A stretch of 64,000 nucleotides of DNA from Dimorphilus gyrociliatus (GCA_904063045.1 CAJFCJ010000031.1:62001-126000); one strand, 5' to 3'; positions 58,136-62,755 are shown, numbered from the stretch's first letter. Notes: a model not told the origin generated them from the sequence alone. Numbers and translations: made by a program.

Positions 58136-60082
58136 ATGAAACATGTACTAAAACGTCTACTTTATTCACACCTGTCAAACCGTTTGCGCTTACATCATTA
58201 AATGTCTTTTACGTAATAAGGGGAAAAAAATTCAAGTTATTTTAACAATTTACCCAACAGGTGGCGTTTTTTATTATTGTTATAAATGATTGTAATTTGT
58301 ATAATATTTTCAAAAGTAATTCCCTTTTATTTTCAATCAGGTGTGACAATTCATAAAACCAAACATCATAGAGGCGTTTGCGATAAGCGAATTTTAAAGA
58401 TCTTAGATCAGCTAACTGAACCGTCTCGACGTGCCTTAAAGATTTTCGAAGGCGAGATTAAGTCTCGTCCTAAAATATCTTCTTTTCTAAAGAAATTAAA
58501 CAGAAAAGTTTGTAGGTAAGGAATATTACATCATATTATTATATTATTATGGTCTAATTGCTATTTAACGTACGTTTTTCCCTTTTTAGAACGTATAAAG
58601 CATATAAAAAATGCATTGAGAAGGAACGCTCTTACAACGAAAAGAGAGCAAAAAGAATACTTCATAAATACAAGATATTAACTGATGTTGTTCATAAATT
58701 CTGCTCAAAACCTAAAATAAAGTCAGATATTATTGAATGCTATACAAAATCGTCATTCGCATCTCTCGACTTGGTATTTTGTTTTAAGCAGGAGAAATTT
58801 GGTATTTCCAAAATTCCTAGATCTCGATGCTTGTTTGTATAGTAATATTAAAATAAATGTTCATTTTTAATATACCTTTTTCTATAGGTTTAAAAAACAG
58901 TATATTGCTTGTCAAAGTTTGTATTTAGAAGAAATATGTGGTAAAGAGACAAAAGATTTTTATAAACATGTAAATATTTTACATTTATCTTTAAAAAGAC
59001 AATGTTGGAAAGAAATACAATCGCCATATAATTATTCAGGTTTTTATATTGTTGTTCATATTTGACGATTGGGTGGGATCTTAAGTGTATAACAAATGTT
59101 TAATTTTTAAACAGGAAGTCTAACGTTTGATAGCAATTGCTCGCTGAATTCTACTACAAAATTTAGAGCATCTTTCGCATCAATGGTTATTAAACTGGAA
59201 GATAAATTGTTTAATTCCTTCTTTATAAGAGAGCCAAAAGAATTGACAAGCCTTTGCAAGTAAGTTGAAAGTTTATAGGGGAAAAGGGTGGGGGAGGAGG
59301 GAAAGAAATGATTTTTATTGTCTATTTTTTACAGTTCGTATAATTTCAACCAAAGAAGAGAGATTGCAAATTTACAAAAGAATTGTCCAAACGTACTAAA
59401 AGCTATTTATGATCAATCTCCAATGTTTGAAGATTCTCAAAAACGTTTTGAGCAATTCTGCATTAATCAAAAGGCTTTCAAAAACAGCAACTCCTGTTTT
59501 GATGAAATGCGGAACAATAAAGTTTGTAAAGCTTCCGAAGAGAAATACAGGAAACTAATCGCAGATATTTCGCATGTGAGCTATCTCTGTAATAAAGATT
59601 ATTGGAAAAAGGTTTTTTTCCTCCAAAAGGAATATAACTATCGCTTGGAGAAACACAAAAGACATTTATACGAACAGCTCGTGAAGGAAACTTTGCAGAA
59701 TAGGGAAATAAATAGAGAAATTGAAACTCTAACAGATTGTATAAGTTTAAATATAGTAAAAAAATGCGGAGGAGAAGTACTGAGTAAAGTTATAAGGAAA
59801 TTAAGTAATTCTATTCTCAATTCTACACATAGTATCGGACTTGAGTTTCGGCCGAATTGTGAGGTGTTAGCCGAAGCCAGATATGCTAATATTGGTGTTC
59901 AGATTACCCGAGTTACAGTACCAACTCGGCCAAGATCTATTACACGGCTAGAAAAGAGTATACCTTCAACAGAGACTCCAATTTCTGAAAAGTATCATAG
60001 TTCATCTGATAGGATAACCTTTGGGGCTTCATTCTTAATTATAATTCTCTCATTAATCTGCAGTCGGGCCATTTCTTCATAA
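58136..60082 (+). CDS. Cys-rich helical secreted protein, probably GPI-anchored (multi-exon; first exon uncertain)
   Basis: Short introns link segments VAFFIIVINDC/VTIHKTK...VC, RTYKAYKKCIEK...FCSKP...IIECY, YIACQSLYLEEICGK, ...EIANLQKNCP...LTDCISLNIVKKCGG. The C-terminus SSSDRITFGASFLIIILSLICSRAISS* is small residues followed by a hydrophobic tail. The ATG at 58136 (MKH|VAFF) is a best guess. Confidence 0.68.
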
Positions 60083-60571
60083 CTCTATATTGTTTTAAAG
60101 AAAAAAGAAAGTTCGATAAGATTTTATTCGAAGTATGTGATAAGATTTCAGTGCGATATGACATTTTTGTATATATATATATATATATAGATATATATAT
60201 ATATGTATAAGTTTGTTATGTATTTGTTGGTGCTCCTTAAACTGTGGTGTTCGATTGTTTTTCGTTTTGTTTTTTTTTTCTTCTTTTAAGTAATAAATCT
60301 TTCTTTACACAAGAAAACTATTTATAAAAGAGCCTAAATCGAATAATTAGTAACTTTAGCGATAGACTTTACAAAGATTTATTTATTAAGGTATTCTTGT
60401 TTTGCTTTTTATAAAAAAAAAAGAACTTCGCCATACTTGTTCATTTCGAAATGTGTTCTAATTGAAATAATACACTGTCCTAGTTTATTTGTAATATGCA
60501 GACGTTGTGTTGAAATTTTGCTTAGCAGGTATGTTTATTAACAATTCAACACTTGCAATAGTTGACGTCAG

Positions 60572-61348
60572 ATGAACGAACAAGTGAAAACTACGGGAGC
60601 CGAAAATAACCCTCACAAAGTATATAGAAATGGAGAGAACTATTCAAAAAAATTGAGAATTGTTCACATATCTGATACCCATCTTGAAAGGGACAATCAG
60701 AATATACCAGACGGTGATATAATTATTCATTCAGGTGATTTTGGTCAATACAGATCGGGATTATCAAAGGAAGAATACTTTTCAAGATTGAACAGTTTTT
60801 TTAAAAATCTACCTCATAAATATAAGATTTTCGTTGGTGGAAATCATGATAGTCCTCTGGTAGATTGCCAGAGAAGTTTAATAACCGAGTGTCAGTATTT
60901 GATTGATGAATCGGTGACGATAGAAGGTATACGAATATACGGATCACCTTGGAACAAGTGGAGATATACATCGTTTGCCAGAGCGTTTACCATAAAGAAT
61001 ATAAAAGCCAAGTGGGAATTAATAGATCAAGATTCGGACATAGTTGTAACTCATCAGCCGCCATTTAATTTGCTCGATTTGGCCAGTTATAACCATTATA
61101 TACCGAATTTTTTGGTTAAACTTCTAAGCTCTTCTCGCTGCGAGATTTGTAGTCAATATCATCCAGGTAGAAATCATTGGGGATCGAAAAGTCTTCGAAG
61201 GATTCTAACTGAAAAGATAAAGCCAACACTACATCTATTCGGTCACGTTCACGAGTGTTTTGGGGCTACAACAAACGATAAAATACTCTTTTGTAACAGC
61301 GCTATTAAACAACGGGGACATCCTCAGGTTATCGATTTCTACTTTTAA
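60572..61348 (+). CDS. MPPED1: MPPED1/2-family calcineurin-like metallophosphoesterase, copy A (intronless, 258 aa)
   Basis: All five motifs present: ISDTH, HSGDF, GGNHD, VTHQPP, FGHVHE; plus GIRIYGSPW and a terminal PQVIDF strand. Confidence 0.88.
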   Translation: MNEQVKTTGAENNPHKVYRNGENYSKKLRIVHISDTHLERDNQNIPDGDIIIHSGDFGQYRSGLSKEEYFSRLNSFFKNLPHKYKIFVGGNHDSPLVDCQRSLITECQYLIDESVTIEGIRIYGSPWNKWRYTSFARAFTIKNIKAKWELIDQDSDIVVTHQPPFNLLDLASYNHYIPNFLVKLLSSSRCEICSQYHPGRNHWGSKSLRRILTEKIKPTLHLFGHVHECFGATTNDKILFCNSAIKQRGHPQVIDFYF

Positions 61349-61355
61349 ATCGGTA

Positions 61356-62105
61356 ATGGCGGGAAACAAATCTGCATTCAAACACGAGAAAATTGGTTCT
61401 GGGAAATTAAAGGCTCGCGTAGTAATTGTTTCTGATACGCACGGTTGTCACAATAAGCTTTTACCTTCGATTCCTGATGGAGATATTTTCATACACGCCG
61501 GCGATTTTATATATTATGATGATCATAGTACTAAAGATTTTAAGGGCGCTTGTCTGCAAGTAGATGAGTTCTTTTCAAAATTGACACATAAAAGGAAATT
61601 CATTGTCTTCGGTAATCACGACCAGCCTTTCTGTGATATTGCATCCGATGTCATTCGTGATAGTTTGAAGAATGTTGAATGTTTACTGGACGAGATGGTC
61701 GAAGTGGACGGTCTTCGAATCTACGGTTCACCTTGGACTGTTAGAAGAGAAAGCTCGTCGGCAACTTCATTCACCAAACAACGTGAAGATATGAAAGACG
61801 TTTGGGAGAAAGTTCCAAGAGATTTGGATATTCTAGTAACTCATAGTCCACCTTACGCTCTGCTAGATGGTGAACCTGAGGGTACTACTCCTTGTAAAAT
61901 TAAATGCAGAGATCATCCCCATTTAGGTTGTCCTCATTTGCGGAAAGCTATTCTTGAAGATATAAAAGCAAAAATGCACGTTTTCGGACACAATCATCGA
62001 AGTAATGGTCTATATAGATATTCTAAATGCAAAACTTTGTTTTGTAATGCTGCAATTGATATGAGAATGTACGGTTTGCCTATTGTCGTTGATTTTCACG
62101 AATAG
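61356..62105 (+). CDS. MPPED1: MPPED1/2-family metallophosphoesterase, copy B (intronless, 249 aa from ATG 61356)
   Basis: VSDTHG, HAGDF, FGNHD, GLRIYGSPW, VTHSPP, FGHNH and PIVVDF. The ATG has strong context (ggtaATGG) and lies 7 nt after the copy A stop. AATAAA at 62258. Confidence 0.88.
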   Translation: MAGNKSAFKHEKIGSGKLKARVVIVSDTHGCHNKLLPSIPDGDIFIHAGDFIYYDDHSTKDFKGACLQVDEFFSKLTHKRKFIVFGNHDQPFCDIASDVIRDSLKNVECLLDEMVEVDGLRIYGSPWTVRRESSSATSFTKQREDMKDVWEKVPRDLDILVTHSPPYALLDGEPEGTTPCKIKCRDHPHLGCPHLRKAILEDIKAKMHVFGHNHRSNGLYRYSKCKTLFCNAAIDMRMYGLPIVVDFHE

Positions 62106-62755
62106 TTCTTAAATTTTCTTTCCATCAAGATAAAGCATAATATACTTGTCTTTATAAGGCTGTATAGAAATATATTGCACAGTCTTTTTTTATACAATAT
62201 ATTTGTTATATACGTAAGTAAGAGGATATTAATTGAAGAGTTTGACTATGAATAACCAATAAAATATATCAATTATAGAAAGAATTTTATCCTTCGTTGG
62301 CTTGTTAATCTTTCTCTTTCTTTTTAATTTACATGGAACAGCGTGAATAAAGACCATAGAGTGAAGATAAGAGCATGCGGTGCGACTTTAATTAATCTAA
62401 TAGACAGCAGTTGCAAAGAAGACTAAAGGAAGTTGGAAAATACTTTCTAAAATTAACCAAAGGTAGAATATAAATCGGTCATATAGGACTGTCAGCAGAT
62501 CACCTTATCATAAAATTTCATACGATTTACCAAATAAATTAGACTGGAGAAAGGAGTTTTTCAACACTGAAATTAAAAATTTTACGCCCTTCGCCAGCCC
62601 CTTTTAAAATAAATAACGAATATCTACAATGTCATTTCTTATAAGTTATCTTTGTCATATATCAAGTATATCTTATGAAAATACTTAGAGATAATATGAA
62701 AACCAGCTGAAGAAATCTTTACTGTATATTTACTGTATATTTTCCAGTATATACA

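Follow-up and report, generated by a model that had tools for sequence, protein, structure and literature searches.

A conserved pair of MPPED-like ORFs in Dimorphilus gyrociliatus probably shares one dicistronic mRNA with an ATG-depleted first cistron

How is an ORF translated when it begins only seven nucleotides after the stop codon of another complete ORF? This question is raised by a locus in the annelid Dimorphilus gyrociliatus, where two metallophosphoesterase ORFs, referred to here as ORF A and ORF B, lie in tandem across the sequence TTT-TAA-A. The original prediction for this locus was either a +1 ribosomal frameshift that joins the two ORFs or a bicistron. We analyzed 64 kb of the genome (G000:C31:62001-126000), referred to as the window, and positions are counted from its first letter unless another contig is named. 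The features of the locus are listed in Table 1. When the sequence was re-read, the coordinates and frames of both ORFs were found to be as predicted. ORF A opens with the ATG at 60572 and closes with a final sense codon TTT (61343-61345) and the stop codon TAA (61346-61348). ORF B opens with the ATG at 61356, closes with TAG (62103-62105) and is in the +1 frame relative to ORF A. Reading in the +1 frame from 61344 gives F-K-S-V-M-A-G.

Table 1. Features of the two-ORF locus, in window coordinates.
Feature	Position	Strand	Remarks
Candidate promoter element, 12-mer CTAATTGAAATA	60458..60469	+	Putative promoter role
Unspliced transcribed unit over both ORFs	60476..62284	+	RNA contigs X2, X3, X4
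14-codon uORF, TGA overlaps the ORF A start (ATGA)	60531..60575	+	Inside all three RNA contigs
ORF A, MPPED-like metallophosphoesterase, 258 aa, ATG-depleted first cistron	60572..61348	+	PF00149
TTT-TAA-A, proposed shift site	61343..61349	+	Present in DNA and RNA contigs
Intercistronic spacer, 7 nt	61349..61355	+	Sequence
ORF B, MPPED-like metallophosphoesterase, 249 aa, second cistron	61356..62105	+	PF00149
Likely poly(A) signal, first canonical AATAAA after the ORF A start	62258..62263	+	X3/X4 ends 21 nt downstream

Both ORFs are intact and keep all of their metal ligands, as had been predicted, with the five metal-binding motifs DxH, GD, GNH(D/E), H and GHxH present in each. ORF A and ORF B scored 49.6 and 62.6 bits against PF00149, for which the curated cut-off is 21.5 bits. 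The nearest solved structure for both was MPPED2 (ORF A to 3RL4, E 2.6e-29; ORF B, E 1.2e-17). Eleven residues (D35, H37, G55, D56, G90, N91, H92, H161, G224, H225 and H227 in ORF A numbering) are invariant among ORF A, ORF B, their counterparts in a related worm (A' and B', described below) and three homologues. Judged by sequence, both proteins are calcineurin-like metallophosphoesterases of the MPPED-like branch and are predicted to be phosphodiesterases. They share the fold of mammalian MPPED1/MPPED2 (PDB 3RL3, 3RL4, 3RL5) and are full-length with all metal-binding motifs, but their identity to MPPED2 is low. They are also well diverged from each other, in agreement with the original prediction, at 39% identity. 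One difference from MPPED2 is a Cys/His-rich insert in the A-type proteins, which is present only in shortened form in ORF B. The insert (CxxC...H...H) is located at 61130-61190, corresponding to ORF A residues ~188-205, is common to molluscan homologues and is absent from the Capitella homologue. It possibly forms a small zinc site.

In a tree of the family, ORF A nested among lophotrochozoan MPPED1-like proteins, while B and B' formed a long branch in the same eukaryote-dominated clade. Because of the long branch of B, the tree leaves the sisterhood of A and B undecided. Horizontal transfer or retroposition, which had been raised as a source of the pair, is not borne out, given the position of ORF A with lophotrochozoan MPPED1-like proteins and the synteny of the locus in two worms. 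Capitella has one homologue, with no tandem neighbor within 8 kb, and the contigs of P0003, P0004 and P0014 carry one gene each. Dimorphilus itself has a third MPPED-like paralogue at G000:C22:16543-17451 (L003:1306-2214), a single exon of 302 codons. This paralogue grouped with insect homologues and not with A or B, and its ATG density is normal.

The RNA evidence consisted of assembled contigs of three runs from two studies. Each run gave one contig that spans both ORFs: X2 (60499-62467), X3 (60483-62284) and X4 (60476-62284). X2, X3 and X4 show four GT..AG joints in the upstream gene (58340-60158), where the contig X1 is colinear with the genome. They were therefore taken to be RNA, on the basis of splicing in the same runs. 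The stretch 60499-62284 was present in one DNA contig (X1) and in the three RNA contigs with 0 mismatches and 0 gaps. This colinearity of the RNA with the genome means that there is no intron, no indel in the run of four Ts and no majority editing. ORF A and ORF B are thus intronless, as predicted, and an assembly indel error in the T run, against which the original prediction had warned, was absent from DNA and RNA contigs alike.

The 5' ends of the RNA contigs at the two ORFs lie within 24 nt of one another, and 60159-60475 was covered by no RNA contig of the three runs, indicating that the two-ORF unit has its own 5' end. The 12-mer CTAATTGAAATA is found 7-30 nt upstream of these 5' ends and occurs only once in the 64-kb window, with no copy upstream of ORF B. 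It also occurs once in the 8.4-kb locus of the related worm (L011:5037-5048), again upstream of ORF A', and may be a conserved promoter element. At the other end, X3 and X4 stop at 62284 with 4-5 unaligned letters beyond. As had been claimed, the 7-nt spacer is too short for a poly(A) site or promoter, and there is no AATAAA between 60400 and 62257. Variants of the signal (ATTAAA) are located at 61304, 61406 and 61899. The one at 61406 had been suggested to end the ORF A mRNA inside ORF B, but no RNA contig in the three runs ends there or at the other two variants. In fact, no RNA contig of these runs starts or ends inside the two-ORF unit. It looks as if both ORFs are carried on single mRNA molecules, with the qualification that contigs would also merge overlapping transcripts.

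The closest database proteins were P0002 (62% identical to A) and P0122 (63% identical to B), both of which came from one worm, and sequences of this relative were obtained from the Logan runs SRR23372215, SRR23372228 and SRR23372231. A 16.5-kb contig of the relative has the same layout as Dimorphilus, with ORF A' (L011:5193-5975, 260 aa), a 25-nt spacer and ORF B' from 6001 (245 aa), downstream of an orthologue of the Dimorphilus upstream gene (32% identity). The pair, its order and strand and the short spacer are therefore kept in the relative, and both ORFs are intact in four of its contigs. Another contig, of 931 nt, begins 83 nt before the A' start codon and crosses the junction into B'. 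The distance is similar to the 73-96 nt from the RNA contig starts to the ORF A start in Dimorphilus. Synonymous sites were saturated in the A/A' and B/B' comparisons (pS 0.75-0.83) with a dN of ~0.28, and both proteins are therefore under purifying selection. In one further contig, the gene call for ORF A' is broken up by a 1-nt deletion (L006:650-670). This contig was treated as a contig error or a rare variant, the other ORF A' contigs being intact.

The key result concerns the ATGs of the first ORF, which are scarce. Only three are found between the A and B start codons in Dimorphilus and two in the relative, compared to 14-20 in each of five control coding sequences of the same family and similar length and G+C (B, B', two monocistronic homologues and the Dimorphilus C22 paralogue). 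ORF B has 18, a normal density. The ATGs in Dimorphilus ORF A (60630, 60846 and 60906) are all out of frame and open ORFs of 8, 5 and 3 codons, while those in ORF A' are at different positions and open ORFs of 7 and 16 codons. Neither ORF A nor ORF A' has an internal Met codon. This is not rare by itself, as 17 of 238 family proteins also have none. When synonymous codons were resampled, ORF A was expected to contain 10.0 ATGs instead of the 3 observed (P ~0.001), and ORF A' 11.4 instead of 2, a count reached in 0 of 2000 resamples. ATG was the most depleted of the 64 trinucleotides (5 vs 83, ratio 0.15, Fisher P 1.3e-7; next best 0.003), and its reverse complement, CAT, was not depleted. Both halves of ORF A are affected; the first halves of A and A' together contain 4 ATGs where ~16.6 were expected (P 2.6e-4). 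The first 373 nt after the A' start codon are free of ATGs in the relative, as are the last 450 nt of ORF A in Dimorphilus. In 264 kb of the Dimorphilus genome, 44 ORFs of 180 codons or more were sampled, a small number, and the density of ATGs was lowest in ORF A (3.9 per kb, against a median of 20.4). Although only one orthologous pair from two species was compared, the ATG desert is maintained rather than merely inherited, since synonymous sites are saturated and the residual ATGs are at different positions in the two worms.

Selection against AUG within ORF A is predicted only by models in which 40S subunits scan through it, because ribosomes that are elongating pass over internal AUGs. 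With a promoter inside ORF A, only the stretch downstream of it would be kept free of AUG. With the observed anatomy, the colinear RNA, the ATG depletion and their conservation in the related worm, we consider it probable that the locus gives a conserved dicistronic mRNA and that ribosomes get to its second cistron by leaky scanning or reinitiation. The bicistron half of the original prediction is supported in this respect by colinear RNA contigs over both ORFs and by specific ATG depletion in both species. Scanning as the route to ORF B is what we infer from the sequence.

In such a dicistronic arrangement, one promoter upstream of ~60476 and one poly(A) site near 62284 would give an unspliced mRNA of ~1.8 kb with two paralogous MPPED-like ORFs, and a separate protein would be made from each AUG. 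40S subunits that enter at the cap would pass the ORF A start codon by leaky scanning. The context of this codon is weak (cgtcagATGa, C at -3 and A at +4), and that of the ORF B start codon is strong (tcggtaATGg, G at -3 and G at +4). In the relative, both the A' and B' start codons have A at -3, and A' is not obviously leaky. Another possible way of bypassing the first AUG is translation of a short uORF that ends on or after it, followed by resumed scanning. The Dimorphilus uORF in Table 1 and a 32-codon, out-of-frame uORF at L011:5150 in the relative, which extends past the A' start, are uORFs of this type and could carry ribosomes past that AUG. The 40S subunits would then scan the ~780 nt of ORF A, which selection would keep nearly free of AUGs. 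The residual AUGs open mini-ORFs of 3-16 codons and would permit reinitiation, and the AUG of ORF B would then be used for initiation. The start context of A' in the relative and the strong context of the residual AUG at 60630 in Dimorphilus count against this scheme. The TTT-TAA-A that closes ORF A would be incidental.

The other half of the original prediction was a programmed +1 frameshift at UUU-UAA-A, which would produce a double-domain fusion enzyme of ~510 aa. The site is real in the DNA and RNA contigs, it would let tRNA-Phe re-pair perfectly, the +1 frame is open through the spacer, and both species have ORF B in +1. The +1 sites of prfB, antizyme and Euplotes genes likewise have a shift-prone codon next to a stop codon, with the downstream ORF in +1. 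Unlike at those sites, however, the Dimorphilus sequence is not conserved, ORF B begins with a start codon of its own and no stimulator was found. ORF A' ends in TAC-CTG-TAA (CTG-TAA-A at the site), without a slippery TTT and with 25 nt in place of 7 before the next ORF. Its +1 frame reads K-Q-S-S-I-stop, reaching a TGA five codons on, inside the spacer, so that no fusion is possible in the relative. ORF B and ORF B' each have their own AUG, and N-terminal conservation begins just after it. No conserved stimulatory structure or sequence was seen at the junction: its RNA folded no better than shuffled sequence (z -0.5), and the profile of synonymous-site conservation was flat, with no hidden element (synonymous codon identity between A and A' was 0.32 in the last window of ORF A vs 0.46 overall). 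UAA-A is an efficient terminator in eukaryotes, which also counts against a shift. A TTT as the last codon combined with a +1 downstream frame amounts to a coincidence of about 1 in 100, and one that was noticed after the fact. The fusion enzyme is thus highly improbable, and a +1 frameshift is very unlikely to be a conserved mechanism here, although a low level of species-specific slippage could occur in Dimorphilus.

The main rival of the dicistronic reading, which we still regard as unlikely, is a pair of overlapping monocistronic mRNAs. Transcription of ORF B would start inside ORF A, the ORF A mRNA would read through or end inside ORF B, and the assembler would have merged the two. Overlapping transcripts are inseparable in contigs, the three ATTAAA variants would be available to end the first of them, and the ATG-free last 450 nt of ORF A would also suit a long 5' UTR of ORF B. 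Intergenic regions are short in this compact genome, for which canonical promoters and no operons were reported (PMC7854359). On the other hand, overlapping mRNAs do not predict depletion over the whole of ORF A, and the first halves of A and A' are depleted. The ATG-free stretch directly after the A' start in the relative likewise argues against an internal promoter. Conservation of synonymous sites is no higher at the 3' end of ORF A than elsewhere, so no conserved internal promoter is visible there, the shared 12-mer is found upstream of ORF A only, and none of the RNA contigs in the three runs begins or ends within the unit. A less probable explanation, and one we doubt more strongly, is termination-reinitiation, in which ribosomes finish ORF A at the UAA and begin again after 7 nt, or after 25 nt in the relative. 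Both species have a very short stop-to-start distance, short distances of this kind typify viral termination-reinitiation, on which reviews exist, and the RNA is colinear over both ORFs. It leaves the ATG desert unexplained, however, since elongating 80S ribosomes ignore internal AUGs. Restart after an ORF of 258 codons also normally requires a dedicated upstream element, but the last 90 nt of ORF A showed no conserved nucleotide element and the junction no notable fold. Termination-reinitiation could contribute alongside scanning.

An 11-bp inverted repeat was noticed at the junction in Dimorphilus (61329-61357), where 61329-61339 pairs with 61347-61357. The loop of this hairpin includes the TTT and the T of the TAA, and the AU of the ORF B AUG falls in its stem. 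No such hairpin was seen by eye in the junction of the relative. It was dropped as a functional element, being found in Dimorphilus only and in a region that folds no better than shuffled sequence.

Dicistronic mRNAs of this kind are known, but we found no report of one from an annelid in the literature. Scanning through an AUG-free first cistron has been shown experimentally in a few systems, namely Drosophila stoned, Snapin and green algae. According to the citation of Wall, Phillips and Kelly in PMC3372440, the second cistron of stoned and Snapin in Drosophila needs an AUG-free first cistron for its translation (Wall et al. 2005, J Biol Chem 280:27670). Those loci, and the present one if the dicistronic reading is right, give animal nuclear mRNAs with two long ORFs, no trans-splicing and an AUG-poor first cistron (stnA/stnB in stoned). 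The Dimorphilus locus differs in that it is from an annelid, separates its ORFs by just 7 nt, or 25 nt in the relative, encodes paralogous enzymes and keeps a few out-of-frame AUGs with mini-ORFs, and it is known here from sequence and RNA contigs. Bicistronic mRNAs of green algae are translated by leaky scanning past a weak Kozak sequence of ORF1, and added AUGs lower the output of ORF2 (PMC11892635). These algal loci resemble the Dimorphilus pair in being conserved, with short inter-ORF distances (e.g., 14 nt), few or no AUGs before ORF2 and short 5' UTRs. Their weak ORF1 and stronger ORF2 Kozak sequences are matched in Dimorphilus, whereas both starts of the related worm have A at -3. In contrast to the 258-codon enzyme of Dimorphilus, the first ORFs of algae are mostly short. 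The two lineages are unrelated, and the origins are therefore independent.

Paralogues on a shared message also have precedents. In an overview of FlyBase (PMC4528330), 159 dicistronic pairs are counted, ~18% of which are by implication similar genes, many of them probably tandem duplicates. The reference list of the same article includes the dicistronic Adh/Adhr mRNA of Drosophila (Brogna and Ashburner 1997). Like A and B, Adh and Adhr are paralogues, in their case tandem duplicates, and the downstream one is on the shared dicistronic message. The Adh-Adhr spacer is hundreds of nucleotides long, Adh is not AUG-free, and the mechanism of Adhr translation is unsettled.

The genome paper described operons and trans-splicing as absent from D. 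gyrociliatus, which has canonical promoters and a compact genome (PMC7854359). That statement was based on the absence of spliced leaders and concerns spliced-leader operons, not dicistronic mRNAs, so a dicistronic locus would qualify it, and the pair described here is a concrete case for checking the claim that the species has no operon-like units. A spliced-leader trans-spliced operon was considered at this locus and rejected. The 7-nt spacer contains no AG and hence no splice acceptor, the RNA contigs are colinear with no loose end at the junction among those listed, and no spliced leaders were reported for the species (PMC7854359). If the dicistronic reading is true, the case would add to the known systems an annelid with two full-size paralogous enzymes separated by 7 nt and kept in a second worm. 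It is also conceivable, if doubtful, that Dimorphilus and its relatives have repeatedly compacted their genomes by means of cap-dependent dicistronic mRNAs that are translated by scanning through a first cistron free of AUG. This would represent an operon-like solution without trans-splicing, and the published view of compaction with canonical gene regulation would then need to be qualified. As the pair shows, an ATG desert can, by sequence alone, tell leaky-scanning dicistrons apart from models of frameshift, reinitiation or an internal promoter. For annotation, ORF A and ORF B should be kept as two genes and not as a frameshifted fusion.

Several observations were also made on the neighborhood of the pair. 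The upstream gene consists of five exons separated by GT..AG introns of 55-75 nt, which were confirmed by the RNA contigs. It is fast-evolving, as seen in its identity to the relative's orthologue, and its product has a hydrophobic C-terminus. On its 3' side, a TA-dinucleotide repeat with T-runs (60159-60289) breaks both DNA and RNA contigs. The last exon of this gene (59423-60082) had the second-lowest ATG density of the 44 sampled ORFs.
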